Sequence record: PP496440.1 | Direction: 5' to 3' (one strand) | DNA: 64,000 bases | Part shown: piece by piece, positions 3,927 through 56,761 of the stretch | Layout of the letters: each line of letters starts with the position of its first letter | Position numbering within the stretch: position 1 is the first letter of the stretch | The notes under the pieces: generated by a model | Databases searched by the model: none | Told to the model about the DNA's origin: nothing | What the model saw: the letters and a program-made list of their open reading frames with translations, nothing else | Position numbers and translations under genes: made by a program

Positions 3927-4185
3927 GCGAAGTGCTCCTCTTGCTGTCAATGGGCTGCTACACACTATAAGCATGAGCAGATCTTCGAGCAGGCCACCTC
4001 GACGGCCCCTGCTACGGTAAACTCGGATTCACCCCTCCACGCGTATATAACGTTTTGGGAACAATTCAAATTACATACGACCAGAGTGCCATGGTGTCCA
4101 TACCTGCGTCAAAACGCCCGTTTGCCATCATGTCGGGATATGCCCAGCCATATGAGTGCTAAGTCATTGATTACCTTGACAATTT

Positions 4186-4210
4186 ATTAGGGGGTATGTG
4201 GCCCCCTAAT
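4186..4210. repeat. Perfect 9-bp inverted repeat in the divergent intergenic region
   Basis: ATTAGGGGG (4186-4194), 7-nt spacer, CCCCCTAAT (4202-4210). Confidence 0.7.
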
Positions 4211-4253
4211 TCATGGAAATTCAGGTATTTTGGCTATATCTGCGTCAAAGTGC

Positions 4254-4282
4254 TTGACAAACGCTGCCAGGCCCTGTATACT
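4254..4282 (+). promoter_or_regulatory. Sigma70-type early promoter
   Basis: TTGACA-17 nt-TATACT. Confidence 0.85.
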
Positions 4283-4345
4283 GCACGGGCGAGCTACTAT
4301 TCCAGCCCGCTACGTCCATGCCCACCGGGGCACGAAGGAACCAAC

Positions 4346-4822
4346 ATGAAGAGCATGATTCGCCGCAAAGATGGGTTTTACACGGAGTTGTTGGCCGGTG
4401 CTAAAGACCCTGTCGCCCTTTCCAAGACTGCATTCAACCGTGGACTGACCCGGATCGTTGCATCTATTACGAGCAGTGTTAAGCTGCGGTACGTAGTAGA
4501 TTCCGAAACCGGTGATGCGGAATACCGGGTGAGAGTGAAGTTTCAGAAAAGCCAGTTGACCCGCAAGGGTACTCCGGCTATCAAGGTGGGACGGGTACTG
4601 GTTCCTGTTGATCTCGACAGCATTGCAGTACATTGCACGTGTCAGGACTTTCGATTCACCTGGTACACCTATTTGAAGAACTCTGGGCACGCTGCCGGTT
4701 GGTTCAAGCAGGTGGAGTTGAAAGGATCTGGCCGCACTCGGGAAGCTGACCACGCAGGTTGCTGCAAACACGTCGCCGGTGTACTGGCAATGGTTGAGCA
4801 GAACGTTATCGTCAAGCTGTGA
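4346..4822 (+). CDS. SWIM zinc-finger protein
   Basis: ATG at 4346 with AAGGAA RBS; HCTCQDF...CCKHV matches the SWIM CxC-xn-CxH signature. Confidence 0.75.
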   Translation: MKSMIRRKDGFYTELLAGAKDPVALSKTAFNRGLTRIVASITSSVKLRYVVDSETGDAEYRVRVKFQKSQLTRKGTPAIKVGRVLVPVDLDSIAVHCTCQDFRFTWYTYLKNSGHAAGWFKQVELKGSGRTREADHAGCCKHVAGVLAMVEQNVIVKL

Positions 4823-16858: not shown

Positions 16859-18462
16859 TTGTTCCACTCCTTGCGAGCCTTCAATTGGGCCTCGGTAGGG
16901 GCCACCCGGAACCGTGTGTTCTGGGGTGACAAGTTCTTGAGCAGTGTGGTGGTCACGCATTCGTGCGGCGTGATATGCAGCAGCAGGTCACTGGCTCGGG
17001 TGTACGAAACGTATTGCACGTGGGGTAGCTGACCGTCTTCACAGTCGAACCAGTCATCGATCACCGCAACCCGTTCGCTCTCCATACCCTTCGCACCCCA
17101 TGAGGTGTTCAGCTCCACACCTTTGCCGTGGTCGTTGGCAATGATCTTGGTGATGAACGTCTTCACTTCGGCGGCGCTACCCAGGTCCCAGTTGGTGACG
17201 ATGTACAGCGCAGCGTCTGCGGCATCCTTGATCAGCGGCTCCTTGGCCTCCTTGCGCAAATCATCCAAGGCCTTAACGAAGTCAAGAGTGGACTTGCGGC
17301 CACAGCGCATGGCGACACCGATCACTTGTTCCAGCACCTTGGCTTTCTTGAAGGTAACCTCCAGCCCCCGATCCATGTACTCCAGTGCGATACGGATCAG
17401 ATGCTTGTTGCGAGCGCTGACCACACGTTGCACGTCGAACTTTATCATGCTCTTGATACGGTACGGATCCTTCTTGGTGTGCGCCGTCAGCATCTTGACT
17501 TGCCCACCTTCGGCGAATGCTTCAAGCGGCACATTGGGGAAGCGACCTTTGACGAACTCAACGATCTTAGACTTAGACCGGTACGTGGTGGTCGAAGGTA
17601 GTCGCTTGGCGTTGAACTCCTTGAACATGTCAGCCATGCCCGCACTCAACCCGCCTCGGAACGCATAGATGGCCTGCCATGGATCACCGACGAAGACGAA
17701 CAACATGCCCGGCTTCAATCGGCGGAATAGGCGAAGCGTGTCGTGCTGCACAAGGTTGAAGTCTTGGAACTCATCGACGAACAACACGTCCGGCAGGATC
17801 TTCGCCAGCTTGGCGTACTGCGTGCGTATAAAGCTGTTGGCCAGAACCATGCGGCTCATATCGTTGAAGTCTACCGACGACGTGGTCTCGTCACTGGCTT
17901 CCAACGCTTCACAGATTTCAGGAAGCAGCGGCACCACCTTCTCATGCGGAATCAGGAAGCGATACTTGCCGGTGATCAGTTCCCTGATCTGCTTCTCGTT
18001 GCTGTAGGGGATACCCAATTCACGGATGCGCTCTCCGTGCCAGCGGATGTCCTTGTTCTTCCGGGGTCCATCTTGGGGGAACAGCGCATCCACCACCTGG
18101 AACCACTTGTCGAACATGATCGGTACGGCCTTGGAACCCGTCAAGGTCTTGAACAACTCCAAACCATAGCTGTGCATGGTGGAACTGGAGACTGCCCGAT
18201 CCTTAATACGCTGATCGAACACCTTGGCGTTGTCCGTGTTGAACACGATGGCGCGCATGGTCAGCTTCGGGCACTCTTTACGAATGCGGCGGATAGTCTC
18301 GATGATCAGGGTGGTCTTACCCGATCCGGCACCGGCATCGATACCCACTGCGTCTTGTGGCTTGCCGGTGTACAAGTCTTTAGGCATCGACTTGGCTTTC
18401 TTCAAGATCTCGTTGAAGATGTCATTCTGTTGCTTGGACCAAACTCTTTCAGTAGTGGACAT
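16855..18462 (-). CDS. UvrD/Rep-like SF1 helicase
   Basis: AGAGSGKTT (Walker A), VDEFQD, VGDPWQAIYAFRG, TYRS, and GAKGME...YVSYTRA. Confidence 0.9.
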   Translation of the reverse strand: MSTTERVWSKQQNDIFNEILKKAKSMPKDLYTGKPQDAVGIDAGAGSGKTTLIIETIRRIRKECPKLTMRAIVFNTDNAKVFDQRIKDRAVSSSTMHSYGLELFKTLTGSKAVPIMFDKWFQVVDALFPQDGPRKNKDIRWHGERIRELGIPYSNEKQIRELITGKYRFLIPHEKVVPLLPEICEALEASDETTSSVDFNDMSRMVLANSFIRTQYAKLAKILPDVLFVDEFQDFNLVQHDTLRLFRRLKPGMLFVFVGDPWQAIYAFRGGLSAGMADMFKEFNAKRLPSTTTYRSKSKIVEFVKGRFPNVPLEAFAEGGQVKMLTAHTKKDPYRIKSMIKFDVQRVVSARNKHLIRIALEYMDRGLEVTFKKAKVLEQVIGVAMRCGRKSTLDFVKALDDLRKEAKEPLIKDAADAALYIVTNWDLGSAAEVKTFITKIIANDHGKGVELNTSWGAKGMESERVAVIDDWFDCEDGQLPHVQYVSYTRASDLLLHITPHECVTTTLLKNLSPQNTRFRVAPTEAQLKARKEWNK

Positions 18463-18493
18463 TGGTTTACCTTAACGCTTCACGGTTTCCATC

Positions 18494-18527
18494 CATTTAC
18501 ACGAGGCCTATGCGCGTGGGGTAAATG
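18494..18527. promoter_or_regulatory. Back-to-back GTAAAT promoter motifs
   Basis: TGTAAATGG on the minus strand (18502-18494) and GGGTAAATG on the plus strand (18519-18527), between divergent genes. Confidence 0.65.
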
Positions 18528-18589
18528 AGCGTATAGCAATCGAATGCGTGGAATTAGCCCTTAACGGCGTCCCCACTAGTGGAGAACAC

Positions 18590-20068
18590 ATGAAATCTGT
18601 AGCCGTTGACTACCAAAAGATAGCCAAGGAATGCCAGTGCACCGAGCTGCCTTCCAAGGTAAGAGTTACTCGTGCACGGGTCTATCCAAACTTGAGGACG
18701 TGCCTACTCTTCCTCAAGTACGATGCCAAAGGTGAACTGGTACAAGCCGAGATCACTGCGCCGTACGACACGTCCACTGAGCCAAAGGTGAGGGTGCTCA
18801 AACATCCTGACAAGAAGTCAGACTTCCTTTCATTATATAGGGCGCTGATCCGCCACCAGATCATACCCGAGTCTATTCCGAAGAAAGGTAACGGGATTGC
18901 ACCAACGCTGGAGGTCATCGGCACACTGGTTAGCCTGCTGCCGGAACGGGATGTCGAAACCTTCCGAACCCTTACCCCGGCCATCCAGACTGGCAGCGTT
19001 ATGTACGTCCCTCTGGTTACGTCCCGGCCAATGCCCATGGTGCAACACTGGATACCTGTTGACCAGCATTCAGAGCTGGGCATGATCGAGCTGGTCGATA
19101 CGGATAGCAAGCCTTTCCTGAATCAGTGGGTCAACAGGTTGAGCAACACCGCCACCGGTTATGTGATCTACACCCCGGAAGGCTCACACGGTCAGGAACT
19201 CGCCTGCTTCCGGGTGCCCAATGTACAAGGGGAGGAACTGTGTGTGGTCAAGAAGGTTGACTTCACCCTGACTGTTGCTCGCACACTCAAGCCGGTACTG
19301 ACTGTATCCACCAAGAGTACTCGGGCAGTGTCCCGCATTCCCCTACCCCACTATCTGATGCTGCGCAATCACCACATCAAGGTGGGCACGGTTATTTCCC
19401 TGCGTCGTAACGACCGAGGTGGGTTGGTGTACCATGAGACGGTGGCCGAGGAAGGCATGACGCCCCTGCCGCTGTGTCCACACTGCCACAGTGGTTCTGT
19501 GCTGCGAGGTAGTAGCAATGACGTGTACTGCAATAACGATTCATGCCGAGGCCTAGCCATCGTGCGACTTCGTTATGTCTTGAACAACAAGCTGGACGTC
19601 AAGTACCTGAGCGACAATAAGGTAACGGCGCTGATCAATGACAAGCAGGACCTGTTCAGCTTGCTTAAGACACCGACGCACCAGTTACGGCATAGACCTG
19701 GCTTTGGTGCACGTACCGTGGACGCACTGGAGGAGAAGCTTAACACTATTGCCGGTCTTCCACTGCACACACTGGCCGAGATGTCCTGCGCTTTCTACAA
19801 CGTGGGCGTGCCCCCACTGGATGAGATGGTGTTCAAGAAGATCTTTTCCGTTATGTCGATTGACTACCTGAAAGCGCTGCCGTCTACCGGCAAGATGTAC
19901 AGTCAGCTGCTCGACATCGAAGGTATCCGCAACAACCGCGCAGTGGCTTTCCTTGCTGGCTGGCCTGCATTTCAACAGTGGATGATAGACCTGAACGCTG
20001 CCCTACAGTCTCGCAGCGCAATCTCCACCACGGTAAATAGCCCAAAACAAATTCGAGGTGTTAAATGA
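18590..20068 (+). CDS. NAD+-dependent DNA ligase-like protein with degenerate catalytic motifs
   Basis: LigA architecture: NTase-like region, OB fold (IKVGTVISLRR), Zn finger CPHC...YCNNDSC, HhH (RPGFGART). The KxDG motif is replaced by NLRT, and there is no BRCT domain. Confidence 0.75.
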   Translation: MKSVAVDYQKIAKECQCTELPSKVRVTRARVYPNLRTCLLFLKYDAKGELVQAEITAPYDTSTEPKVRVLKHPDKKSDFLSLYRALIRHQIIPESIPKKGNGIAPTLEVIGTLVSLLPERDVETFRTLTPAIQTGSVMYVPLVTSRPMPMVQHWIPVDQHSELGMIELVDTDSKPFLNQWVNRLSNTATGYVIYTPEGSHGQELACFRVPNVQGEELCVVKKVDFTLTVARTLKPVLTVSTKSTRAVSRIPLPHYLMLRNHHIKVGTVISLRRNDRGGLVYHETVAEEGMTPLPLCPHCHSGSVLRGSSNDVYCNNDSCRGLAIVRLRYVLNNKLDVKYLSDNKVTALINDKQDLFSLLKTPTHQLRHRPGFGARTVDALEEKLNTIAGLPLHTLAEMSCAFYNVGVPPLDEMVFKKIFSVMSIDYLKALPSTGKMYSQLLDIEGIRNNRAVAFLAGWPAFQQWMIDLNAALQSRSAISTTVNSPKQIRGVK

Positions 20069-20829
20069 ACGTTCAAAACAGAACTCGTATCGCTGTGCTT
20101 GTCGGCGGCGGTCTGGACTCCCACGCCTACATGGTGTTGAAAGCCGACCAGCCACAGACGGACTTCATTCATGTGGACTACGGCCAGCGGGTTGCAGTAG
20201 CCGAGAGAAACGCCGTGTTGCAAATGGCTGAGAAGCTGGGCATTGCCCGCAGTCGCGTGTACACGCTGATCTGCAACAAGAAGAATCACATGCGCAAGGT
20301 CAATGACGGTGTGGGTGTGTTGTTTGGCACCGGCCCGGTCGAGATGGACAATGCGTTTGTTAAGGGGCGTAACCTGTTCCTGATTCAGAAGGCCATCGAG
20401 CTGGGCTACGGTCACGTGCACTTGACGCTGACCCAAGAGCGTGGCCGGATGTTCCCCGATGCCGATCTGGCATTCGTCCAGCTGGTTGACAACCTGATGC
20501 ACCGCAGTTATGACGTGAGGGTATCCGCCCCCTACATCATGGAAGACAAGCATCGGGTGATGTTCAAGGCGTATCGGCATTGCCCCGAGTTCCTCGATAT
20601 GTCTTTCACGTGCTGGGTAGGTCCTTATGTGGAATGTGGCACGTGCCCGCACTGCGTCAAGAAGGAAAAGATTCGAGCCGAGATGATCGTTGAGAAAGCC
20701 GACTACGATCTCAACAAGGATGAACGTGAGGCGCAGTGGAAGCAAGTCAAGGCAGGCTACGGCGACGCGTTGAAGCCCGCTGAGACCATCAACGCGACGG
20801 TATCTGTTGCTAAGGGGGAATTTAAATGA
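20065..20829 (+). CDS. queC: QueC-like PP-loop ATPase (paralogue 1)
   Basis: VLVGGGLDS, VDYGQR, FVKGRN, FPDAD and TCW...CGTCPHC Zn motif. Confidence 0.8.
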   Translation: MNVQNRTRIAVLVGGGLDSHAYMVLKADQPQTDFIHVDYGQRVAVAERNAVLQMAEKLGIARSRVYTLICNKKNHMRKVNDGVGVLFGTGPVEMDNAFVKGRNLFLIQKAIELGYGHVHLTLTQERGRMFPDADLAFVQLVDNLMHRSYDVRVSAPYIMEDKHRVMFKAYRHCPEFLDMSFTCWVGPYVECGTCPHCVKKEKIRAEMIVEKADYDLNKDEREAQWKQVKAGYGDALKPAETINATVSVAKGEFK

Positions 20830-21548
20830 ACAAGTTCTTAGGTTGGTTCAAGCGTCTGCTGGATAAGAAACAAAAGTCAGTCACGATGACGTTGACCGAC
20901 GCCGAAGGTAAGTTGGTCACCATTCACATACCGCAAGGTGCGGGTGTCGAATACACGCTCTCGAAGTCGGGCACCCACTTGAACATCTCAGTTAAAGACG
21001 ACGTGTTCATGTTGCGCACGAATGGCGCAGGAGGCAACGGAGGTGGCGGTGGCCGTGGAAGTTCCAAACCCGGTCTCAACGGTGGCCCCGGCCATACACC
21101 TATCCCCCGGTCCCCAAGCTTCACGGGCGCTGGTACGCCGAACTACGGTCACGCAGGCGACCCGCCTGTTGGTGCTCAAGCTTCGTTCCCTATCGGCGCC
21201 CGAGCAACTGTTTCTGGTGGTGGGCGCGTTGGTGGCCTGTCAGGTGGAAGCGCAAACGGCACAATGGCTGGTGGTGGAGATGGCTTAGTTCCCTCTCCAA
21301 TCCGTAGCTCTGATCGAGCTTACCTGATTAGAGGTTTGTATTACGTCATCACGACGAAGAAGATAACGGGAGAGCAATACCCGATCCATGAGCTTCTGCA
21401 TTGGGGTAAGAAGTCAATCGAACTCATGGGCAAGTTCTCCACCGTCCGAGACGCTATCGACGAACTCAAATTGAAGACGGGTATCCCATTCGAAGACCTG
21501 ACGGACTATCAGGTTGATTCCCTTCCCAAACGACTGTGCAAGCCTTGA
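20826..21548 (+). CDS. Glycine-rich protein
   Basis: 240 aa with a central G/P/S low-complexity tract; located between the two QueC paralogues. Confidence 0.7.
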   Translation: MNKFLGWFKRLLDKKQKSVTMTLTDAEGKLVTIHIPQGAGVEYTLSKSGTHLNISVKDDVFMLRTNGAGGNGGGGGRGSSKPGLNGGPGHTPIPRSPSFTGAGTPNYGHAGDPPVGAQASFPIGARATVSGGGRVGGLSGGSANGTMAGGGDGLVPSPIRSSDRAYLIRGLYYVITTKKITGEQYPIHELLHWGKKSIELMGKFSTVRDAIDELKLKTGIPFEDLTDYQVDSLPKRLCKP

Positions 21549-21550
21549 TC

Positions 21551-21559
21551 GGGTAAATG
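21551..21559 (+). promoter_or_regulatory. GTAAAT-type promoter motif
   Basis: GGGTAAATG about 28 nt upstream of QueC-like paralogue 2. Confidence 0.55.
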
Positions 21560-21586
21560 GCCCGTAACTAATCCGGAGACACCAGC

Positions 21587-22405
21587 ATGACCACTGCGCC
21601 CCCAAAGATTATCGTTGCATTCAGCGCCGGTACAGATTCAACTACAGCGGCCTACTACTATCGCAAGCTCGGCTATCAGGTAACGCTGGCCGTGTTCGAT
21701 GACGGCGCATGCAACGATCCACTTGGCCCTCTGTACGATCCGAACAAGCCGAAGGACTTGACCAACTTCTCGGATGAGTTCTACGATTACGTACGGATTC
21801 ACCAAGAGCACACGGAAGGCCATCTTCAGTTCGACTTCGTGGAGATTCGTTATCCGCAACTCGCATTGCTGGAAGCCAACAAGACAGCCAAGCCCGGTCG
21901 GGACAATGCAGCAGCAGCAGAGGCTGACGGCTTGGGCTTCTGGGTCGGCTTCAAGGGCCTGATGGCAATGTTGCTGATGAGCCACGGCGCCGCCAATGGT
22001 TACGAGGCAGTAGTCTTCGGCCACATGCCGTACAACAACCATTACGAAGATGAGCTGCCCCAGAACTTCGAGCTGCTGCGTCAGTACATGGTTACGGCCT
22101 ATGGCAGCCGAGTGGAAATTCCTCAGATCTACCACCCATTCTATCGACCGAATTTCGATACCAAGGAAAAGGTTATTGAGCTGGCGCAGGCAATCGGCGT
22201 GCCCTTGCGAGATACCTATTCGTGCCGCCGAGGTGAAGTAGAAACCCGAGGTATCCTCCTGCCACTTCTGCGTGGCGGTAACTCCAACTACGTGAGCCCC
22301 ACCTACCGTTGGAAGCATTGTGGTACGTGTGAGAACTGTGTCGAACGCAAGCGAGCCTTCGCGGCGCTGGGCATGAAAGATCCTGCCCCTTATATGGAAC
22401 ATTGA
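21587..22405 (+). CDS. queC: QueC-like PP-loop ATPase (paralogue 2)
   Basis: VAFSAGTDS, TKEKVIELA..IGVPLRDTYSC, HCGTCENCVERKRAF. Confidence 0.8.
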   Translation: MTTAPPKIIVAFSAGTDSTTAAYYYRKLGYQVTLAVFDDGACNDPLGPLYDPNKPKDLTNFSDEFYDYVRIHQEHTEGHLQFDFVEIRYPQLALLEANKTAKPGRDNAAAAEADGLGFWVGFKGLMAMLLMSHGAANGYEAVVFGHMPYNNHYEDELPQNFELLRQYMVTAYGSRVEIPQIYHPFYRPNFDTKEKVIELAQAIGVPLRDTYSCRRGEVETRGILLPLLRGGNSNYVSPTYRWKHCGTCENCVERKRAFAALGMKDPAPYMEH

Positions 22406-22406
22406 T

Positions 22407-23423
22407 ATGGCCCTTTCAATCTGGCCGCTGACCGAAGGTGAACTCGGTCAGGGCCTCGTCAACGAACTGAATCGTACCAGCAAGGCGCTGGTGAACCGGA
22501 GTATGTGGTCTTTGCCATTGCTCCGGCGTTTGTTTTATCGGCGCACCGAGATTGGTGTCCCGGAGCTACTCCACGTCTGTACCAGCATTCATCGGGGCAA
22601 GACTTACTTCTGCCTGTTGGTGAACTTCCGAGATGTGGTGATGGGCAACCCCGAGCAATACGGATGGGACCTAGCTGGCCGGTGGTTGTTCTACGATGTG
22701 GATCTGCTGGATACCCCGGAGTTTAAACAGGTAAACGCGGCTATTCGTAAGGTGGCTACGGTCAACACGGTTACCTACGGTCAAGCATTCGTTCCGGATG
22801 AAGGTGGTATGGGGGAGGAGCACTGGATCAAGAAACTGAAAGGTAACTACCGCCCCCACATCTTCGGCGAAAAGTCAAAACAGGTTATCGTCAGTCAGAC
22901 CTGCGGACACGCGGCTACTCACGTTCTGACCGAGGCAGTGATGTCATTCGGTATCCAGCGCGCTGAGAGATTTCTCGCGGAAGGTCAGTCGGATGTCATG
23001 CCGGAGTTGTATGACCTACCCATGCAGCTAGCCGGTCTAGGCTCGATCCCTGGAACCCGGATTGGCACCGTGTCGCTCACCTGCCGGGATACCCGTGCGC
23101 TGATCGGTACCCTGTCGTTCTACGTTGTGGCAGGCTTGGGTCACAGTGATATCTTGTATATGCACGAGATGCTGATTGATCCGGATCCGAAGTGGAAGCC
23201 TCTATCGGTGGCCGTCAACTTGCACATTCAGGCAATCATGTATGTGCGCTATCTAAACAGCCGATCTGATCGGGCTTCGGACTTGGTTATCAACCTCGGA
23301 TTCAACTTGGACGAGAAGTACAACACATACAAAGAGGTGTTCCGTCCGAACAAGTCCGAAATGGAAATCTATACCGGCATGCACACCGAGCCCGGCGTCC
23401 CACTGTCCTGTTTCAAGGGGTAA
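22407..23423 (+). CDS. FemAB/GNAT-like transferase (paralogue 1)
   Basis: WIKKLKGNYR helix and C-terminal INLG...YKEVF, the pattern of FemAB/Acetyltransf_6-like proteins. Confidence 0.45.
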   Translation: MALSIWPLTEGELGQGLVNELNRTSKALVNRSMWSLPLLRRLFYRRTEIGVPELLHVCTSIHRGKTYFCLLVNFRDVVMGNPEQYGWDLAGRWLFYDVDLLDTPEFKQVNAAIRKVATVNTVTYGQAFVPDEGGMGEEHWIKKLKGNYRPHIFGEKSKQVIVSQTCGHAATHVLTEAVMSFGIQRAERFLAEGQSDVMPELYDLPMQLAGLGSIPGTRIGTVSLTCRDTRALIGTLSFYVVAGLGHSDILYMHEMLIDPDPKWKPLSVAVNLHIQAIMYVRYLNSRSDRASDLVINLGFNLDEKYNTYKEVFRPNKSEMEIYTGMHTEPGVPLSCFKG

Positions 23424-23426
23424 GAC

Positions 23427-24428
23427 ATGTACACTCCGTATTCCCAAAACAGTCTGATGCAATCGATCCCGTTGGATGACCAAGGTACATTCGCCCATCC
23501 GCCGTATACGATGGAAGGAGAGTTAACCGACGTGTGGACGAATCCAAACCTATATGGGTTCGTCAGCCTGTTGAACGGCCAGAGCAATAGCCGGGCCTAT
23601 CGAGACTGGATGACCACCCACAATCTTCCAGCCCTGTTCCTCGGTCCGCACCATGAAGACAACTTCTGGTTTGAATTCAGCACTGGTCTTGTCCCCAACT
23701 GCACGCTGGACTACAACGAGATCAACGTCCAAGGCAACCTGCAGGACTTCCTTGGGAGATTGACGTCATCTCGCCGTCGCTCCGTGCTCAAGGCAAAAGA
23801 AACGGATACGACGATCCACAAGGCAGGCTCGGTAGCCAACTTCAACCTGTATCATCCGGTAGAGGGTAGGCTGTATAGTCTGACCGTGATTCACGAACGC
23901 CGGGTGATGAAAGACATTTCAGAGTTTATCGAATCTAAACTCTGGAGTATGAAGCATACGCCTACTGACCTCACGTACGGTGCATTCACCACCCTGATGG
24001 ATTACATCCGGTTGAAGCAGCGAGATGACACGCCGCTGGGCCACCGGTTGCGCAACGTACAGCTCTTGGTTATCCGAGATGAACGCTCCGGGTTTATCGT
24101 GTCGGTACACCTGGTGGCGATCAACACGTTGAAAGATGATTCCATGAACCCCACCAAGACGTACATGCACTCCTTTGCGCGCATCACTGTTCTCCCTGCA
24201 CGTATCGCCTTACTTGCGTTGATCAAGTCGGTTCAAGAGTTAAACGTCACCAGTCAGTATGCGTCCCGTGCACTGGCGAAGATTGACTATCTTGACGTGA
24301 GCAACGTGGTGCTGTCCGAGCGAGAGCAGTACAAGTCGGACTTCTTCACCGGCAAATGCCAAGTGCGTGCGTGGGCATCCCCGGCGCTGCTGGAACGACA
24401 GTTACCTTTCGTTACGCCGATCCCGTAA
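23427..24428 (+). CDS. FemAB/GNAT-like transferase (paralogue 2)
   Basis: FLGRLTSSRRRSVLKA and YLDVS...QYKSDF. Confidence 0.5.
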   Translation: MYTPYSQNSLMQSIPLDDQGTFAHPPYTMEGELTDVWTNPNLYGFVSLLNGQSNSRAYRDWMTTHNLPALFLGPHHEDNFWFEFSTGLVPNCTLDYNEINVQGNLQDFLGRLTSSRRRSVLKAKETDTTIHKAGSVANFNLYHPVEGRLYSLTVIHERRVMKDISEFIESKLWSMKHTPTDLTYGAFTTLMDYIRLKQRDDTPLGHRLRNVQLLVIRDERSGFIVSVHLVAINTLKDDSMNPTKTYMHSFARITVLPARIALLALIKSVQELNVTSQYASRALAKIDYLDVSNVVLSEREQYKSDFFTGKCQVRAWASPALLERQLPFVTPIP

Positions 24429-24430
24429 CT

Positions 24431-24439
24431 CTGTAAATG
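24431..24439 (+). promoter_or_regulatory. GTAAAT-type promoter motif
   Basis: CTGTAAATG in the intergenic gap upstream of 24483. Confidence 0.5.
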
Positions 24440-24482
24440 ATGGGAACAGCCCCACCATCACTTCATCTCTAGGGTAGTTCCC

Positions 24483-25535
24483 ATGCAAGACTTCGATAAG
24501 ATAATGATCGATAGTAGTTTGACATCCAATCTGGTGTACGCAGGGTTGGGTAACTTGATCACGCCCCGCGCACTTGACCTGCTGATCGAACATCAGGCTG
24601 CACTGGAAAACGTATACGCCAATCTGGAAACGGCCTATCAGATTACCCCACCCTTCCCTTGTGAAGCTGCATTCAATTCCCCTGACAAAGATCCTGTGCT
24701 GGTCGCCGACTATCTGAATGCTACTCCCGCCATCCGTTGCGGAGAGCTGGCTGGATTCGAGGCAAAGCCCGGCAGTTACTACCACGCCCCCGCTGCTGGC
24801 ATTTGCCCGGAACATCGCATCGATGTACGAGGTATGTCTTTGCGTGAGTTCGACCACTATCTGGTTGAGCGTAAGGAGGTGTCACGGATCACTACCAATC
24901 TGGTGGCCGACAAGTTCCGCTGTGAGACGCATGTGTACAAAGTGGATGAAGATCATATCCTGATCCATGACGCCGAACGAGTTGGGATCAGCCAGACGGA
25001 CTTCCGCCGCATGTGGGCGCAGACCCGCCGCCGGGAAATCGCTGAAAACTATCTGCAGTACATGCCCATCGAAGATTCCGCCAAGGATGATCAGGTGGTG
25101 CGACTGATCAACGAAGACGTAGCACGGGTGTTCGCCCAGAACGTCGACTACGACCGCATGATTCCGCCCGAGCTGATCTTCGATGGTCAGGGCAAGCCGG
25201 TGCTGACCGTGCTGAAAGATTGCAACGCCAAGGTATTGGGCATTGGTGTGTACGTCATCTACAAGTCAGCTGACCCAGAGCATGACAGCGAACTGCACTG
25301 GCGTGGCGCTTTCTACGATCACGAAGATCCTCGCGTAGCATCCATGGGCATTGAACACGCTCTGGTTGCCAGCGCACTGCACACAGCGTACGCCTGCAAC
25401 GCGGTCCTCTATCTGACCAAGGCACCTAAGTCCGTGTGCGACGCATGGAAGACGGAAGTGCACCAAGGTTACGGTCTGGTCCGTAATGCGATGCCGGAAC
25501 TGTCTGACACCCCTTACATTCTGGCTATCCAGTAA
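24483..25535 (+). CDS. GNAT-like transferase resembling ATE/Fem aminoacyl-transferases (paralogue 3)
   Basis: C-terminal AFYDHEDPRVASMG...VLYLTKAP...AWK resembles the ATE_C/Fem FYDP..SLG...YLG...YK pattern. Confidence 0.4.
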   Translation: MQDFDKIMIDSSLTSNLVYAGLGNLITPRALDLLIEHQAALENVYANLETAYQITPPFPCEAAFNSPDKDPVLVADYLNATPAIRCGELAGFEAKPGSYYHAPAAGICPEHRIDVRGMSLREFDHYLVERKEVSRITTNLVADKFRCETHVYKVDEDHILIHDAERVGISQTDFRRMWAQTRRREIAENYLQYMPIEDSAKDDQVVRLINEDVARVFAQNVDYDRMIPPELIFDGQGKPVLTVLKDCNAKVLGIGVYVIYKSADPEHDSELHWRGAFYDHEDPRVASMGIEHALVASALHTAYACNAVLYLTKAPKSVCDAWKTEVHQGYGLVRNAMPELSDTPYILAIQ

Positions 25536-25540
25536 ATAGC
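25531..25540 (+). promoter_or_regulatory. GTAAAT-type promoter motif
   Basis: AGTAAATAGC overlapping the upstream stop codon, about 29 nt before the ATP-grasp gene. Confidence 0.45.
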
Positions 25541-25568
25541 CGGTAACTCCATCCATTGAGGTACTTCC

Positions 25569-27653
25569 ATGAAATCCGTGAACCCCATCTTCAAGCACGT
25601 TCCCCAGTTCGACTGGCCTGTCATCCCGCGTGCACAGTGGGAAGAGATCATCAAAGGCAAAGAGCATGTGATGTTCGACTCCTTCTCGCAGCTCGCTCAG
25701 GTGCTGGCTATCCCGGTGAGCAGTTACCAGTTCTACTTCGAAGATGGGTCCACGTTGTTCGCCGGTCCCGAAGCAACCTTCACCGCCGCGCCGTACCCGC
25801 TGTATCAGGACCTTGAATTCGTCCTGACCCCTGACGAGACGTTGGTGCCGGGTCTTGCACTGGATACCAAACCGTGGGGCCTGTACACCGACGAATGGGT
25901 GGACAACTACGAAGGTGCGGACAAGGAAGACATCGGCAACAAGACCGGGTTCGAATTCATTCCGCTGTCGGACGCCTTGAAACTGGTGGTCCTCAACACG
26001 GAGACCATGCAGCTCCAGTACACTGCAATCGAGAGCTTCACGTACGACGGCGTGACTTACGTATACCTGCTGGCTGATGGCGTGTGCTGGGTACTGGCGG
26101 GCAAGTCAGGTGGTCTGGTTGCCAGCGAGCATGACAAAGGTGCGGCGTTCATCATGGTGTCCCATCCCGAGTTCGCCGGGTGCAGCGTAGACAACATGTA
26201 TCCAAGTGAGTTCGGTGAAGCGGAAGCGACGTTCTACGTTCAAGACGAGGAACACAACTACCTGGACGCGGCTAACCGCATCTTCGAAGAAGCCAAGGAC
26301 GTAGGCGCGGGCACATTCCTGACCATTGAGACCGGGGATGGACTGCCGACCGCGCTGGCGTACAACCTGCGGTACAGTGATGTGGCCCACGTTAACCTGC
26401 CGATGCACAACATCCACCAGTTCACTTCTCTGCACGTACGACTGGGTGAGACTCCTAACTTTTCCGAGGCCCCGGAAGCGTGCCGCATGAAAGAGGTTAT
26501 GGAGTATCTGGCGGACCCTGAGTCCCCGGTAGATCATTACTGGTCGGCCATCATGGTACTGGAGAAGAACTTCCCCGGTTTCGCCGACGCCCTGAAAGAC
26601 TCCAGTGTCCCGACCCGTGACATCGTGCACTCCAAACAGGCGTTCAGCTTGGAGATCGATCGCCAGTTCGGCAAGGAAGTGGCAAGCAAGATCGGGCTGA
26701 ACACTGGCGTATTCGCTCAAGTGAAAGACCGTGATGAATGGCTGGTACGCAAACACGAGTTCCCTACCGATAAGGTGGCCGTCAAGTACAACACCAAACA
26801 CTTCATCGGAATCTTCGATAAGGACGAGGTATCGAATTCCATCAACATGTGGCTGGCCGGTCAACCCGGAGAGTCGCTGATGATCGAAGAGTACTTCGGT
26901 GAGGGCAATCAGGAATTCAACCTGTGCTATGTGATCAACGAAGAGTTCGTGCAGCCGACGCTGTTCCTGTGCGAAGTCAACAAGATCCTAGGTAATGACA
27001 CCGGCGGCAAAGGTGGCAACACGCTGGCCTGCCATGATGCTCGTATTAACAAGTACCCTGAGTTCTTCGAGCCGGTCAATGCTGCGCTTGCTAACCTGCA
27101 TGAGCACGTGGAAGGTGTGAAGGGCTGGGTTGACCTGAGCTTCATGGTCCGCGACGGAATCCCTTACTTCACAGAGTGGTGCATTCGAATTGGCTGCTCC
27201 AACAACGCCACCATCGTGCGCCAGATGGAGACCCCGCTCGACGTTCTGCTGACCAACGTGGTTAACAAGGTGCATACCGAGCTGTCTTGGAAGCACTCCA
27301 TGTCTGTCAGCGTGGACATCTACAGCATGCCGCTGTCCGCAGGCAATGATGCCAACATGCAGTTCACCGAGTCGCTGACCACGCCGGTCGAGATGGTGTC
27401 CCCGCTCAATCTGGAACTGGCGGCGGAGAGTTTCTTCGACCCGATTGATTCGGCCTGGAACGCGGTGTACGACGGCTACATTGTCGAGGCGTACAACCGA
27501 TATGGCACCGTCTCGGGGTATTCCACCAACTGGAACTTCGCCTGCAATGCGGCGTACAATCACTTGAAAGATCAGTCGGTGTTGTACGGGGCATACCGCG
27601 AAGCGCCTGCCCACCACGACCCACTGACTCTGTTCCCTTTCCTCAAGGCGTAA
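25569..27653 (+). CDS. PurD/GARS-like ATP-grasp amide ligase with an N-terminal extension
   Basis: LEIDRQFGKEV, VAVKY, MIEEYF.E..EF, NDTGGKGGNT and DLSFMVRDGIPYFTEWCIRIG parallel the PurD ATP-grasp motifs. Confidence 0.75.
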   Translation: MKSVNPIFKHVPQFDWPVIPRAQWEEIIKGKEHVMFDSFSQLAQVLAIPVSSYQFYFEDGSTLFAGPEATFTAAPYPLYQDLEFVLTPDETLVPGLALDTKPWGLYTDEWVDNYEGADKEDIGNKTGFEFIPLSDALKLVVLNTETMQLQYTAIESFTYDGVTYVYLLADGVCWVLAGKSGGLVASEHDKGAAFIMVSHPEFAGCSVDNMYPSEFGEAEATFYVQDEEHNYLDAANRIFEEAKDVGAGTFLTIETGDGLPTALAYNLRYSDVAHVNLPMHNIHQFTSLHVRLGETPNFSEAPEACRMKEVMEYLADPESPVDHYWSAIMVLEKNFPGFADALKDSSVPTRDIVHSKQAFSLEIDRQFGKEVASKIGLNTGVFAQVKDRDEWLVRKHEFPTDKVAVKYNTKHFIGIFDKDEVSNSINMWLAGQPGESLMIEEYFGEGNQEFNLCYVINEEFVQPTLFLCEVNKILGNDTGGKGGNTLACHDARINKYPEFFEPVNAALANLHEHVEGVKGWVDLSFMVRDGIPYFTEWCIRIGCSNNATIVRQMETPLDVLLTNVVNKVHTELSWKHSMSVSVDIYSMPLSAGNDANMQFTESLTTPVEMVSPLNLELAAESFFDPIDSAWNAVYDGYIVEAYNRYGTVSGYSTNWNFACNAAYNHLKDQSVLYGAYREAPAHHDPLTLFPFLKA

Positions 27654-27656
27654 TCC

Positions 27657-28820
27657 ATGAGCACTCCATTCCAAGAGTTCACCCTAGAAGGGTGGATTCG
27701 CTACATGAGAGATGAAAGCATCATCTGGCGCGCGTACGCTGATGGTCATCCGGATAAGGTCGAGTTCAGCCCGGAGTGGCGTGACGAGATGTATCGGTTG
27801 ATGGTGCAGTTCAAAGATCTGCTGCCGATGTCGTTTTCCAATCCGGTGTACGGCTTCACTGAAGGTTGGCTGGAAGGGCTCGGACTCCAGCCCTTTTATG
27901 GCGATGATCCGTTCAATCCGATGGTGCAACCGCTTAGCCACCCTCTGGTGCATGTGGGGCTTCCGTTTACTCTGAGCGAGCTGACGGCGGGCGTATGGGA
28001 CTGTCAGTCCCTGAGCGCTCACCTGGAGCGTCCGCTGCTGGTCGATACATTCGAACCGATCCCAGTGCCATCTATTAGCCTGGACGCTTACAAAGCCGTC
28101 CTGACCGTACGGGACCGGGAAGAGATCGTGATGAGTGCGGGAACCCCGGTGAACTACTTCCTCTGGTTGAATAGTCCGATCACCGAACTCAAAGACGACT
28201 TCGACGTTTATCTGGCCAGCCTGACCAAGAAGCGCCGCTACAAAGTGAAGCAGGCACTGGCGACAGTGGGCACCGAAGAGAACCCGGCTATCAGCGTCAG
28301 TACTGGATCTCGTTTCGGCGAAGGGTTGTTGTCCGATCAGGTGAACAGCATCCTCGCGACTTTCGAAGATCCGGTGGACATCGAGTGCATGCTTCTTCAG
28401 CTGCTGTTCGGGGTGGCAACCTGCAATACCCATCCGCATCTTGTCGATCTGGTTTGTGCAGACCATCAGTTGGGGATCTTCATCAGGCGCAACGGCCACA
28501 CGATGAATTTCCTCTACAACCGTGACCCGGACAACCGCGCTGACTCAGGCATCAACCTGCTGACCCAGTACGTGCGCCATCTGCACATGAACCGCCCGGA
28601 AGGTGTGATGTACGTGGACCCGACATGTCGATATCGGCCTGACGAGGACAGTATGAACACCTACAAGCGGGTGATCACCAACGAGAACCGGTATCACCCA
28701 ATGCCGTTCGTCTCGGCTGACCCTGCGCATATCGAAGGTGTGATTACCCCGGCGTTCATTGCAGGTCATTGGCAGATGTCGGCGTCCAATGGCCCGGCCA
28801 ATCCTGAGATGATGGAGTAA
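27657..28820 (+). CDS. FemAB/GNAT-like transferase (paralogue 4)
   Basis: FDVYLASLTKKRRYKVKQAL, a hallmark Acetyltransf_6/FemAB helix, and YVDP...TYKRV. Confidence 0.65.
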   Translation: MSTPFQEFTLEGWIRYMRDESIIWRAYADGHPDKVEFSPEWRDEMYRLMVQFKDLLPMSFSNPVYGFTEGWLEGLGLQPFYGDDPFNPMVQPLSHPLVHVGLPFTLSELTAGVWDCQSLSAHLERPLLVDTFEPIPVPSISLDAYKAVLTVRDREEIVMSAGTPVNYFLWLNSPITELKDDFDVYLASLTKKRRYKVKQALATVGTEENPAISVSTGSRFGEGLLSDQVNSILATFEDPVDIECMLLQLLFGVATCNTHPHLVDLVCADHQLGIFIRRNGHTMNFLYNRDPDNRADSGINLLTQYVRHLHMNRPEGVMYVDPTCRYRPDEDSMNTYKRVITNENRYHPMPFVSADPAHIEGVITPAFIAGHWQMSASNGPANPEMME

Positions 28821-28822
28821 CC

Positions 28823-29770
28823 ATGGCAAAGCACAAGGTCAAAAGGTTGGAAATCAACCACATCTACGACTTCTACCCGTTGTATCAGGTGATGTACGGG
28901 CGTGGCATGGAGACCAAAGCGTTCGAGGTCTCCAAGTTCGCCAAGATGGTGCTGGACTTCGAAGCATCAACCAGTACTCGCCGGAAGTGGGACGTGCTGG
29001 AACCTTTCAGCGGTATCAGCGAGCATGAACACTTCTTCGCTGCTACTGGCCTGAACATCGAGCACTACACCGGCATGGACATCGTGGTTCCAGATGGGGC
29101 CAAAAACGTCATTCAAGGTGACATCATCACCGACACCCTTCCGTTTCACGTCAACGCGGTGTTCGCCTTCTACTACAGCTTGCAGAATGTACGGGACGCC
29201 AAGACTGGCATGCACACGCGGGAAAAGCTGGTGGAGTTCTTCGACAACATCCTCGGCCATCTGCAAGTCAATGCGAACAAGAGCCGTATGCCCGCAGTGT
29301 TCGCTTTCCACCTTGACCAGCCTGAAGACCCTAATTACTATCTGACGTCCCGTGCCGACGTTGGAGGTGAACAGTCATGGACCGCACCCGCGTGTGGTCT
29401 GCTGGGGCAGTGGGTCAAGTGCAAGCCTACTGATACTCTGGAAGTGAAGTGCAATCTGGACACCTGGTACAACCGTGTGCAGTGCACCGCGTACGATCAG
29501 GCGGAGGATATCCAGATTCTGGTAAATGGGCGAGTAGTGGCTACCGTTGAGATCGAACAGCCGTTCACCCATCGGGTCTGGACCGAGCATGAGGTGATCG
29601 ATATCCTGCGGGGTCTGGACTACAATCTGCACTTCCACATGTACAACGGCACCATCTCCAATTACGACTTCTTGATGACCCGTTTGGAAGACAAGCCCGT
29701 TCCCGGCGATGAAGAGGCTAATACTAATCAGATGACAACTGATATGCTGGTTGTCGTTAATCCGAGGTAA
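28823..29770 (+). CDS. Class I SAM-dependent methyltransferase-like protein (paralogue 1)
   Basis: VLEPFSG, YTGMDI, IQGDI and VNAVFAFYYSL. Confidence 0.65.
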   Translation: MAKHKVKRLEINHIYDFYPLYQVMYGRGMETKAFEVSKFAKMVLDFEASTSTRRKWDVLEPFSGISEHEHFFAATGLNIEHYTGMDIVVPDGAKNVIQGDIITDTLPFHVNAVFAFYYSLQNVRDAKTGMHTREKLVEFFDNILGHLQVNANKSRMPAVFAFHLDQPEDPNYYLTSRADVGGEQSWTAPACGLLGQWVKCKPTDTLEVKCNLDTWYNRVQCTAYDQAEDIQILVNGRVVATVEIEQPFTHRVWTEHEVIDILRGLDYNLHFHMYNGTISNYDFLMTRLEDKPVPGDEEANTNQMTTDMLVVVNPR

Positions 29771-29772
29771 GA

Positions 29773-30690
29773 ATGGCTAAGCCCAAGATCCCTACACGAA
29801 CCATCCCCACGTTGTACCAAGACTGGGGATTGTACAGCGCCATCTGCGAACTGCCGCAGGAGACGATGCTGATGATGTCGCGCTTCGTGGCAGACCGGAC
29901 TATAGAGCATGCTAATAGGCATGACATAGATCGTGTGTCGATCATGGAACCTTTCAGTGGTCCTATCCCGTATTACGAACCTGATATCGACAGTTTCCTT
30001 ACTAGAGCTGGCATAGGTTTAGACACGTATGATCATGTGGAATACCTAGATCACGGTGAGCTGACCAAAAAGAACAATATCATCATCGGGGACATCACCA
30101 CCATAGATCTTAAGCAAAAGTACGATGTCATCTACGGTAGTTACGGTAGCTTGGCCTGCCTGTTGCTGGATCAGACGCATAACAAAGCGTACGAGAAATC
30201 TCACGCGGCGTTGGTCAACATTCGCGAGCACCTGAAACCCGGCGGCATCTTCGTGCTAAACGCCAATGGGTCAAGCGAGAGTCTGCTGAATAACCTGTTG
30301 AACTCTGATGAGCCGGATCAAGAGATTCGCGTCCGTCCGGGATCGCAGTTAGGTAAGGCGTTCCGAATCAAACCAGACAGTAACGCGCTGCTTCGCTTCA
30401 CCTATCATGTGGAGTACGACCGGCGCACCACCTGCACCATGTGCCACTACAGCGATATGGTGCTGTCTGTAAATGGAGTTGACATCCAGCGCTGGGAGGT
30501 GGAATCCCCGACGTATCTTGCGCCGCTGGATGAACCCGAACTAATTCGAATGGCAGGTATGGCTGGTTTCAATCTGGACAACACTGAGTTCTACGGATTG
30601 GACACCACCGGTTATCCTGCCTTCTTCAAAATGGATACGGTCTGCGACGGGTCATGGTCACCCGCCGAGTTCGTAGTCTTTCGCACCTAA
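29773..30690 (+). CDS. Class I SAM-dependent methyltransferase-like protein (paralogue 2)
   Basis: IMEPFSG, IIGDITTIDLKQKYDVI and HLKPGGIFVL. Confidence 0.8.
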   Translation: MAKPKIPTRTIPTLYQDWGLYSAICELPQETMLMMSRFVADRTIEHANRHDIDRVSIMEPFSGPIPYYEPDIDSFLTRAGIGLDTYDHVEYLDHGELTKKNNIIIGDITTIDLKQKYDVIYGSYGSLACLLLDQTHNKAYEKSHAALVNIREHLKPGGIFVLNANGSSESLLNNLLNSDEPDQEIRVRPGSQLGKAFRIKPDSNALLRFTYHVEYDRRTTCTMCHYSDMVLSVNGVDIQRWEVESPTYLAPLDEPELIRMAGMAGFNLDNTEFYGLDTTGYPAFFKMDTVCDGSWSPAEFVVFRT

Positions 30691-30700
30691 CGAGGTTCCT

Positions 30701-31906
30701 ATGAGCGTTATCATCCCCACCGTAGCGATGGAGAGTGGTCAGCCAGACATGATCATTCCGGGTTGTGCGACACCTACCCCGGTCAAGTCTTCCAAGAAGC
30801 TGTACGAACGTGAAGACTTGATGGCGTACGACAGCGAGTCGGAGCATTGGCAGAAGCAGCTGGCCCGCCGCTACGCTCACCATGGTGAGATGGTCGGTGT
30901 GTTGAACAACGTCGAGGTGGTGCCGGAAGCCACCTATCAGAACTTCGACATGAAGATCACCCCGTACACCGCGCAGTTGATGGACCAGAACGACCCCAAC
31001 TGCCCGATCCGTCTGCAGTACATGCCGACCAACAAAGAGCTGGAGTCGATTCAGCGTGAAGAGACCATGCACAACGAGCTGGGCGAGGAAGAGGACACCA
31101 TCCCCGGTACCTCGGTCGTGCACCGCTACCCGCGTCGCGTCTTGTTCCTGACCACTACCCAATGCGCCAGCTTCTGCCGTTACTGCACCCGTGCACGCAT
31201 CGTCTCCCACGGCGGCGAAGCGGCGATCACCAAGAAGCACCTTGACGCCAGCATCGACTACATCGCTGGGAACAAGGACATCGAAGACGTGCTGCTGTCC
31301 GGCGGTGACCCGTTCATCCTGCCAGACAACAAGCTCGACGAGATTCTCGGTCGTATCCGCGCCGAGGCACCTCACGTTCGCTTCCTGCGTATCGGTAGCC
31401 GACTGCCGGTACAGATGCCGACCCGTATCACTCCAGAGCTGTGCGAGATTCTGGAACGCCACAACGTCAACATGGTCAACATCCATGTGAACCATCCGAA
31501 AGAAGTGACCCCTCTGCTGGCCTCCCGGATGAAGATGTTGCGCAAAGCGGGAGTCATGCTGGGCAATCAGGCGGTCCTGCTGAAAGGCGTGAACGACTCC
31601 ATCGAGGTGATGACCGAGCTGTGCTTGCGCATGGTCGAGATGGGTGTGCGTCCGTACTACGTCTACTCCAACGATCCGGTGGCCCAGGCCGCACACTTCA
31701 CCGTGTCGCTGAAAGAGATGCTGAATATCAACGAGGGTATGCGTGGCTTCCTGTCTGGCCCGGCTATGCCAACCTTCGTGGTAGACGGCGTGGGTGGCTT
31801 GGGCAAGATGCCGGTGCAGAAAGAGTACGTCGGCTTCGATAAGAACGGCGGTATCTTCGCCCAGAACTTCGAAGGGAAAACGGCCCGCATGCCCCATCTG
31901 GAATAA
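30701..31906 (+). CDS. kamA: Lysine 2,3-aminomutase family radical SAM/PLP enzyme (KamA/EpmB)
   Basis: HRYP.RVL, CASFCRYCTR (CxxxCxxC), LSGGDP, RIGSR.P..P.RIT, NQ.VLLKGVND, PYY, and GGLGK (PLP lysine). Confidence 0.95.
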   Translation: MSVIIPTVAMESGQPDMIIPGCATPTPVKSSKKLYEREDLMAYDSESEHWQKQLARRYAHHGEMVGVLNNVEVVPEATYQNFDMKITPYTAQLMDQNDPNCPIRLQYMPTNKELESIQREETMHNELGEEEDTIPGTSVVHRYPRRVLFLTTTQCASFCRYCTRARIVSHGGEAAITKKHLDASIDYIAGNKDIEDVLLSGGDPFILPDNKLDEILGRIRAEAPHVRFLRIGSRLPVQMPTRITPELCEILERHNVNMVNIHVNHPKEVTPLLASRMKMLRKAGVMLGNQAVLLKGVNDSIEVMTELCLRMVEMGVRPYYVYSNDPVAQAAHFTVSLKEMLNINEGMRGFLSGPAMPTFVVDGVGGLGKMPVQKEYVGFDKNGGIFAQNFEGKTARMPHLE

Positions 31907-55789: not shown

Positions 55790-56761
55790 ATGAAAGATAT
55801 GCGCTATACCGAACTGTTCTATTCCCTCCAAGGTGAGGGGTTGCGCGTTGGGGTGCCTTCGGTATTCTTCCGCATGTTCGGTTGCAACTTCGAGTGCAAG
55901 GGATTCTCCAATCCTGAAATGAAAGATCCCAACGTGATCCCGGCCATCAATCTGCTGGCGATCAACGACGCCGATCTGGAACTGGGCTGTGACTCTCGTT
56001 ACAGCTGGCACAAGGACTATCGCAACCTGGCCATCAAAGCTGCTCCCCATGAGGTGGCCAACACTTTGATCGACTTCACGAAAGAGAAGCACTTGGCGGC
56101 GGTGGCTCGCTGGCCCAAGCGCAATCGAGCAGGTAATGTCGTCCGCTTGATCCCCGGACTTCCTATAGATGGAGTCCTTCAGATTGCTACGCTGGCGCAC
56201 ATACCAGACTGGGTGTTCACCGGCGGCGAACCGTTCATGCAGCAAGAGCAGCTGGAAGGTCTGCTGCGTCACGCCATGTACGTTGTGGAAGAGGAGGACG
56301 TTAACTTTGGCCTGCTTGGCCTGCCGATGCTGACTTTCGAGACCAACGCCAGTATTTCGATGAGAGACTCCATGCTGGATTGTCTCAAAGATTACAACGA
56401 TGGCTTCGGCGACGTGCACTTCTCTAACAGCCCCAAGCTGTCATTCACGGGAGAGCATCGCAACGCGGCTCTGAAGCCCTACGTTATCGAGCAACAATGC
56501 TCTATCGGGGGCTCCAGTTCGTTCAAATTCGTGGTGCGCCCTGCTCGCGAAGACTTCGATGAGCTGATGGAGTTCATGCAAGAGTATCAACCCTACATGG
56601 ATGAAGGTAGTATCGAGAACATATACGTCATGCCGGTCGGCGCCAGCTTGCACCAGCAACAAGCCATCGCCACGCAGGTTGCGGAGCTGGCACTGGAATA
56701 CGGACTGTCCTACAGCCCACGGCTCCAGTGTGACCTGTGGGCCAACAAGATAGGGACGTAA
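55790..56761 (+). CDS. queE: 7-carboxy-7-deazaguanine synthase (radical SAM)
   Basis: ELFYSLQGEG...PSVFFRMFGCNFEC...CDS, VFTGGEPF, FETN, SPKL, FKFVV, and PRLQ. Confidence 0.9.
   Translation: MKDMRYTELFYSLQGEGLRVGVPSVFFRMFGCNFECKGFSNPEMKDPNVIPAINLLAINDADLELGCDSRYSWHKDYRNLAIKAAPHEVANTLIDFTKEKHLAAVARWPKRNRAGNVVRLIPGLPIDGVLQIATLAHIPDWVFTGGEPFMQQEQLEGLLRHAMYVVEEEDVNFGLLGLPMLTFETNASISMRDSMLDCLKDYNDGFGDVHFSNSPKLSFTGEHRNAALKPYVIEQQCSIGGSSSFKFVVRPAREDFDELMEFMQEYQPYMDEGSIENIYVMPVGASLHQQQAIATQVAELALEYGLSYSPRLQCDLWANKIGT

Follow-up and report, generated by a model that had tools for sequence, protein, structure and literature searches.

A PurD-like ATP-grasp ligase linked to a lysine 2,3-aminomutase and a Fem-like protein in Pseudomonas phage vB_PpuM-KoPa-5, with a possible role in 7-deazaguanine hypermodification

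Results and Discussion

The gene and its genomic setting

The window analysed here, 64,000 nucleotides in length, is the right-hand 64 kb of the ~201-kb genome of a Pseudomonas putida myophage (record PP496440), and the subject of this study is one of its genes, KoPa5_00194 of Pseudomonas phage vB_PpuM-KoPa-5, the host of which is the non-pathogenic P. putida KT2440; the phages are maintained in culture. Base 25569 of the window is base 162657 of PP496440. The open reading frame (ORF) is intact and lies within a run of twelve tightly spaced genes of the same strand (18548-31906), where 33 nt separate the stop of the previous gene from the GAGG region of the target. The following features were recognized in and directly before it (dN/dS, ratio of nonsynonymous to synonymous substitution rates):

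25558..25561, + strand: Shine-Dalgarno sequence GAGG, 7 nt upstream of the ATG, read from the sequence
25569..27653, + strand: target ORF with ATG start, 694 amino acids plus stop
25569..25832, + strand: N-terminal module, residues 1-88, with the patterns NPIF..V.QFDWP...R..WE and YQFYF.DG...YAGPE..FT (alignment A6)
25833..26309, + strand: variable acidic linker and beta-rich region, residues 89-247, dN/dS 0.15
26310..27650, + strand: PurD-fold ATP-grasp ligase, residues 248-694, with N, B, A and C domains

Its sequence is shared without any difference (100% identity) by hypothetical proteins of vB_PpuM-KoPa-5 and Voja-6, and the counterparts in seven sister phages, which come from Estonia and Finland, are 92-99% identical. 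In comparison with the two most divergent of these sister phages the gene has a dN/dS of 0.04-0.11, thus it is a real, constrained coding sequence. No Pfam or PHROGs match was obtained for the protein in direct family scans, and there is no other purine gene within +/-12 kb, in agreement with the first-pass annotation of this DNA, which had noticed that purine-synthesis genes were missing nearby.

A rare phage family with the fold of PurD

The signal of the single sequence was marginal, PurD structures being found at E ~0.04. An exhaustive HMMER search of 1.84 billion protein cluster representatives yielded only 31 relatives, all of them in phage-like contigs; 28 of these constitute the profile and alignment A1, to which all column counts of the family given below refer, and they share only 19-42% identity. 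The word-based homolog search retrieved only 3 clusters, the scan of IMG/VR with the single target protein gave no match, and with the signature motif (alignment A7) no relative was recovered from 185,579 species genomes or from IMG/VR, a result limited by the pattern used. The A1 profile matched ten PurD structures (the best was 5vev, E 4e-21, starting from PurD residue 8), and PurD is by far the nearest family to the target both in sequence and in structure. The four-domain architecture of PurD (N, B, A and C) is present, and so is the ATP-grasp fold with its B-domain lid. In Pfam the target has no match to GARS_N, GARS_A or GARS_C, and 3 of the 28 relatives weakly touch GARS_A. The PurD-type motifs which the first-pass annotation had seen in the C-terminal 430 amino acids are indeed there, and the homology covers the whole four-domain enzyme. 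The target founds a family of ATP-grasp enzymes that is rare, confined to phages and derived from PurD; the enzyme most likely descended from PurD or is its sister, and was re-tooled for other substrates.

Such close kinship might also be expected of a divergent but genuine PurD, a glycinamide ribonucleotide synthetase which raises the purine supply during infection. This is extremely improbable: the target reaches only 28.4 bits (E 7e-7) with the NCBIfam purD equivalog TIGR00877, the cut-off of which is 288, the proposed phosphoribosylamine loop has been exchanged in every member, as have two of the four glycine ligands (see below), and instead of a purine gene nearby there is an obligate linkage to genes of a KamA-type aminomutase and a Fem-like protein.

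Conserved catalytic residues and exchanged substrate sites

The residues were compared by alignment to E. coli PurD. In PurD, Lys103, Lys143, Glu185, Glu192 and Lys214 have been assigned to ATP, Asp212, Arg287 and Glu292 to glycine, and Glu100 to Mg (PMC8880213); elsewhere Asp217, Arg292, Asp295 and Glu297 are given as the glycine ligands, and Arg13 and Glu14 of the GGREHA loop as the proposed phosphoribosylamine site (PMC2978367). Seven residues of the active site are invariant in the phage family (E362, R365, K406, G479, G519, E536 and R540, each 28/28), while E469, K481, D522, N545 and R644 are nearly so. E362, R365 and K406 are the equivalents of Glu100, Lys103 and Lys143, E536 is the Mg-binding Glu and R540 the acyl-phosphate Arg. 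The hinge residues E440 (25/28) and E441, the ribose-binding Glu E449 and the Arg of the GGR motif in the C domain (R644, 26/28) are also kept. The characteristic ATP-grasp set, that is the Lys contacting the ATP phosphates, the hinge Glu, the acidic Mg residues and the catalytic Arg, is present in the target, so that the ligation of a carboxylate to an amine with the use of ATP is to be expected.

The substrate sites differ from those of PurD (EC 6.3.4.13; PDB 2xcl, 2yw2, 1gso, 2qk4). In place of the GGREHA loop the target has G-D-G-L-P-T, with family columns of Gly/Ser/Ala and Thr/Ser/Ala. The GDPE motif is replaced by G-C543-S-N545 (Cys in 13 and Val in 10 members, Asn in 27). The DHK motif has become E469-V-N471, with Asn at the position of PurD Lys214, but E469, which takes the place of the Asp contacting the amine of glycine, is retained in 26/28. 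Of the four glycine ligands, accordingly, the Arg is kept (R540), one Asp is exchanged for Glu (E469) and the GDPE pair is lost, so the PurD set is incomplete. E-x-N is E-W-C538 in the target, a departure within a site that is otherwise intact, the column being Met in 23 and Cys in 5 of the 28 members, and GPNTGG is changed to G-G-K481-G-G, a GGKxG loop not found in PurD, the Lys of which occurs in 27/28. The glycine-rich B-loop is four residues shorter, and an acidic residue, D522 (27/28), occupies the Mg-ligand position of PurT and biotin carboxylase, where PurD has Gly. A 247-aa N-terminal extension belonging to its own lineage also distinguishes the target from PurD. The absolute conservation of the ATP and acyl-phosphate machinery with both substrate sites exchanged is the pattern expected of an active ligase with new substrates.

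The missing Asn of E-x-N, the missing PurD Lys214 and the shortened B-loop could alternatively mean that the protein is a catalytically dead scaffold or substrate-binding subunit, all the more so as the operon already holds one apparent pseudo-enzyme, the LigA-like protein at its head. We consider this very unlikely, since seven active-site residues are invariant among members of so low identity, and the compensating Lys (K481) and the acidic Mg ligand D522 are nearly invariant, which is typical of an active enzyme.

The conserved gene triad

Two partner genes lie downstream of the ligase:

27657..28820, + strand: o387, tandem-GNAT fold of the Fem/MprF/Sbb17 type, candidate aminoacyl-tRNA-dependent transferase
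30701..31906, + strand: KamA-family lysine 2,3-aminomutase with CxxxCxxC, the carboxylate Arg, D325, D362 and the pyridoxal phosphate Lys K369

The contexts of ten relatives were retrieved, and the occurrence of KamA was counted in contexts of at least ~10 kb. A radical S-adenosylmethionine (SAM) lysine 2,3-aminomutase of the KamA type was located 0-5 genes from the ligase in all seven contexts with enough DNA (the window, Vibrio phage GR11A, and our loci L019 and L020, L021, L022, L027, L028); it stands three genes downstream in the window, adjacent in GR11A and adjacent upstream in L027. The five remaining contigs, 2.6-4.9 kb long, end too early to show it. The aminomutases of the relatives are 50-63% identical to that of the window, the ligases 26-39%. 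In the alignment D325 and D362 correspond to D293 and D330 in the Clostridium enzyme, two Asp residues that hold the epsilon-ammonium group of lysine. As this pair is kept, the substrate of the KamA protein is most likely a basic amino acid, and probably lysine.

A jackhmmer search detected members of the o387 family in all ten loci, the short contigs among them, usually abutting either the ligase or KamA (homologs in L002, L003, L004, L021 with two copies, L022, L025, L027 and L028). The sequence profile of o387 gave no match against the PDB, and the protein was identified by fold search alone: its AF2 model (pLDDT, the model confidence score, of 75) matched Sbb17 and Sba18 bound to streptothrisamine, FemA, FemX, MprF, aaPGS and DUF2156 in Foldseek (E 1.6e-6 to 1e-4, TM 0.4-0.5). 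Neither BLAST nor jackhmmer indicated paralogy of o387 with the ORFs o338, o333 and o350, the last of which has a weak GNAT-type lead in the ESM Atlas only. A conserved stretch of o387, K-K-R-R-Y-K-V-K, could be a patch binding nucleic acid (tRNA or DNA).

The KamA-type aminomutase, the PurD-like ligase and the Fem/MprF-like tandem-GNAT protein thus form a conserved phage triad. The first-pass annotation had proposed that the ligase joins beta-lysine or another acid to an amine on a base or a peptide. The link to beta-lysine is much strengthened by the seven contexts and the retained Asp pair; between the two acceptors the base is favoured, for reasons given below.

Parts of this arrangement are familiar from other systems. 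In the beta-lysylation of elongation factor P (EF-P) a KamA-family aminomutase, EpmB, likewise feeds beta-lysine to a dedicated ligase, but EpmA is a paralogue of aminoacyl-tRNA synthetases and not an ATP-grasp enzyme. The logic of pyrrolysine synthesis is the same, a radical-SAM rearrangement of lysine (PylB) being followed by the ATP-grasp ligation of the product (PylC; 4ffl, 4ffr); however, PylB is a methylornithine synthase and not a KamA-type 2,3-aminomutase, the acceptor of PylC is the epsilon-amine of free lysine, and PylC is structurally more distant from the target than PurD. Sbb17 and Sba18, tRNA-dependent peptide synthases of the streptothricin type, the former among the best matches of o387, provide examples of the Fem-like acylation of an amine on a non-ribosomal scaffold. 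EpmB/EpmA and Sbb17/Sba18 act in bacteria on a protein or an aminosugar antibiotic, whereas the setting of the target is the replication module of phages. A literature search on a further analogy, to blasticidin BlsI, yielded nothing and the analogy was not used.

Genes of the 7-deazaguanine pathway and the replication module

The surroundings of the triad include the following genes of the window:

18548-20068, + strand: LigA-like protein at the operon head, 506 aa, matching TIGR00575 positions 394-497 (E 1e-6), central OB/Zn-finger/HhH region only
20065-20829 and 21587-22405, + strand: two QueC-like PP-loop ATPases flanking a 240-aa ORF without assigned family
28823..29770 and 29773..30690, + strand: two class-I SAM methyltransferases, o315 and o305, paralogous (23% identity, E 4e-8)
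55790-56761, + strand: QueE-like 4Fe-4S protein, above the Pfam cut-off, ~28 kb downstream of the ligase
58730-59470, + strand: GTP cyclohydrolase I FolE, above the Pfam cut-off, ~31 kb downstream

Outside the window PP496440 encodes two further candidates above the Pfam cut-off: a TGT/DpdA-like protein of 456 aa (80008-81378; L018:6009-7379, minus strand) and a PTPS/QueD-like protein of 400 aa (17352-18554; L017). Both are much longer than typical, the Pfam match is confined to the C-terminal part and the extra region is unexplained. DpdA-like genes are present in both complete phages. Genes of the QueC type precede the ligase in the window (two), in GR11A (two), in L021 (three in a row), in L023 and in L027. 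The two of the window have kept the C-terminal Cys cluster and have altered PP-loops (G-G-G-L-D-S and S-A-G-T-D-S); in the amidation of 7-carboxy-7-deazaguanine (CDG) some QueC-like copies may use amines other than ammonia. Wherever the context is long, the cassette is situated in a module of replication and nucleotide metabolism, with a helicase on one side and topoisomerase II on the other, and a LigA-like protein heads it; in Vibrio phage GR11A this position is taken by a 440-aa 'LigA', 25% identical to that of the window. The 7-deazaguanine genes and this position favour a base over a peptide as the target of the ligase.

A target other than DNA should be weighed at this point: the triad may make or modify a small molecule, a tRNA base or a protein, for instance a beta-lysyl peptide or nucleoside metabolite, or carry out an EF-P-like beta-lysylation. 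The pairing of a KamA protein with a ligase is known from the latter (the EpmB match), the best structural relatives of o387 act on streptothrisamine (Sbb17, Sba18) or cell-envelope precursors (FemX, MprF), and on several short contigs the triad occurs in the absence of QueC genes. All long contexts, however, lie in the replication module described above, a LigA-like DNA-binding protein heads the operon, QueC-like genes are recurrent and DpdA-like genes occur in both complete phages, and we judge a non-DNA target to be improbable.

The same genes raise the question of the polarity of the reaction. As QueE makes CDG, and the phage has FolE, QueD-like and QueE-like genes, a carboxylate borne by the base (e.g. 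CDG, free or in DNA) might be phosphorylated by the ligase and beta-lysine might supply the amine. There is a precedent for a carboxyl handle on a DNA base being amidated with an amino acid in phage S-B43 (PMC12783734), and an acid that has no alpha-amine would be in keeping with the loss of D295 and E297, ligands of the glycine amine. This version is nevertheless rather unlikely in our judgement. The carboxylate of CDG is naturally activated by QueC-type PP-loop enzymes, one to three copies of which are encoded beside the ligase, and E469, the counterpart of the Asp binding the glycine amine, is retained. Moreover, in PurD, PurT and PurK it is the small acid that is activated, and a nucleotide-like partner supplies the amine.

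A proposed role in DNA hypermodification

We give an about even chance to the reading that the protein is an active ATP-grasp ligase which activates the carboxylate of beta-lysine and joins it to an amine during 7-deazaguanine hypermodification. The mechanism is proposed by analogy with PurD, PurT and PurK; beta-lysine is the obvious acid in view of the obligatory KamA neighbour, and the retention of E469 fits an amino-acid substrate. The KamA-type lysine 2,3-aminomutase would make beta-lysine, the carboxylate of which, either in the free compound or in one already tethered by one of its amines, would be phosphorylated by ATP. The acyl-phosphate could be stabilized by R540 together with Mg held by E536 and D522, and the attack of an amine would then give the amide. 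Two orders of events can be envisaged. A QueC paralogue may tether an amine of beta-lysine to the carboxyl group of the deazaguanine, and the ligase would extend the chain from the free carboxylate, or free beta-lysine may be attached by the ligase to an amine of the base or of the growing chain. The free amines might be elaborated by the Fem-like transferases and the N-methyltransferases, while the DpdA-like enzyme would place the 7-deazaguanine in the phage DNA. The end result would most likely be a 7-deazaguanine bearing an amino-acyl or peptidyl side chain, which would shield the DNA from host nucleases. The more inclusive proposal, in which the triad, the QueC-like proteins and the N-methyltransferases together build a beta-lysine-containing peptidyl side chain on 7-deazaguanine in phage DNA, possibly extended in a tRNA-dependent manner and N-methylated, is put forward only tentatively.

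Several points weigh against this picture. The QueC-like PP-loop enzymes could perform the base-linked amidation themselves, leaving a different step to the ligase. The DpdA-like and QueD-like genes are distant from the ligase cluster, and neither complete phage has QueF, so that a phage-made preQ1 as amine acceptor is unsupported; for this reason the amine of preQ1 was not adopted as the acceptor. The Fem-like assignment of o387 is based on moderate structural scores (TM 0.4-0.5). With Met or Cys for the Asn of E-x-N in all members and Asn for Lys214, the phosphate and Mg geometry of the ligase is unlike that of every characterized relative. Finally, the paper on the CEPEST collection mentions neither this cluster nor DNA modification in KoPa-5.

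In the literature we found no paper connecting the 7-deazaguanine pathways of phages with an aminomutase or an ATP-grasp ligase. A precedent is CmoY, the ATP-dependent ligase with which Synechococcus phage S-B43 attaches glycine to a base of DNA (PMC12783734), hence ligase chemistry of this type does occur on phage DNA. CmoY, however, is an asparagine-synthetase-like, AMP-forming PP-loop enzyme acting on 5-carboxymethylcytosine, with neither the ATP-grasp fold nor a beta-amino acid, and its enzyme class is represented in the present cluster by the QueC-like proteins and not by the target.

If the proposal is correct, its consequences reach beyond this phage. Hypermodification of DNA is one of the main ways in which phages evade restriction and CRISPR, and it is a source of enzymes for DNA chemistry. 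The known deazaguanine modifications carry small groups (nitrile, amide, aminomethyl, formyl, methyl), and the known amino-acid decorations are found on pyrimidines or on the N6 of adenine. With a PurD-derived ligase tied to a beta-lysine synthase and to a Fem-like transferase, a much larger, cationic, peptide-like decoration is suggested, along with enzymes so far unseen in DNA modification; such a decoration would constitute a new chemical class of DNA hypermodification. The target would then be the first ATP-grasp ligase, and the Fem-like proteins the first aminoacyl-tRNA-dependent transferases, acting on a DNA base. The implied pathway would be new if confirmed, with a core enzyme of purine synthesis recruited by retaining its ATP machinery and swapping both substrate sites.

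The N-terminal extension

The unknown N-terminal extension of about 250 amino acids described in the first-pass annotation is real, and residues 1-247 have no match in Pfam, PHROGs, NCBIfam, the PDB or the ESM Atlas; they were modelled at pLDDT <50, and in residues 89-247 no recognizable fold was seen at this confidence. The structure rows obtained from the ESM Atlas were discarded (TM <=0.35, no usable feature match). BLAST revealed no paralogy between the extension and the neighbouring ORFs. It is, however, not a property of the family: 13/28 members consist of the core only (~420-480 aa), and the extensions of the others, 77-322 aa in length, fall into at least four groups without detectable similarity (BLAST; hhalign probabilities <17%). 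The module of residues 1-88 is common only to the two closest metagenomic relatives, an HMM (hidden Markov model) search finding P0001-P0004 only, and no free-standing counterpart of this module or of any extension group was found by HMM search in the ORFs of the fetched loci.

The extension is under purifying selection, residues 1-88 being the most constrained part of the gene in the Pseudomonas phage lineage (dN/dS 0.015 against the phage Peetri, compared with 0.11 in the catalytic part). It is probably a functional, lineage-specific accessory region with a docking or targeting role, dispensable for catalysis.

Further observations on the cluster

The nearest solved relatives of o315 and o305 are amine N,N-dimethyltransferases, and a weak match to the daptide methyltransferase of NCBIfam was also obtained; their nearest curated relatives include N-terminal methyltransferases of RiPPs (ribosomally synthesized and post-translationally modified peptides), a hint of N-methylation of side-chain amines. 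Around the QueE-like and FolE genes there are four ORFs without family match (56764-57105; 57105-58328, of 408 aa; 58331-58717; 59480-60058), which may join the deazaguanine pathway. Small GNATs were found in L019, L027 and L028. Two PurD-like ligases stand in tandem in L026 (192-1628 and 1562-2545), suggesting two successive ligations in some phages. In L023 the ORF directly downstream of the ligase (3270-4145) has a weak match to Amidoligase_2 (PF12224), which would be another type of amide ligase, and it is followed by a QueC1-like gene (4142-4648).

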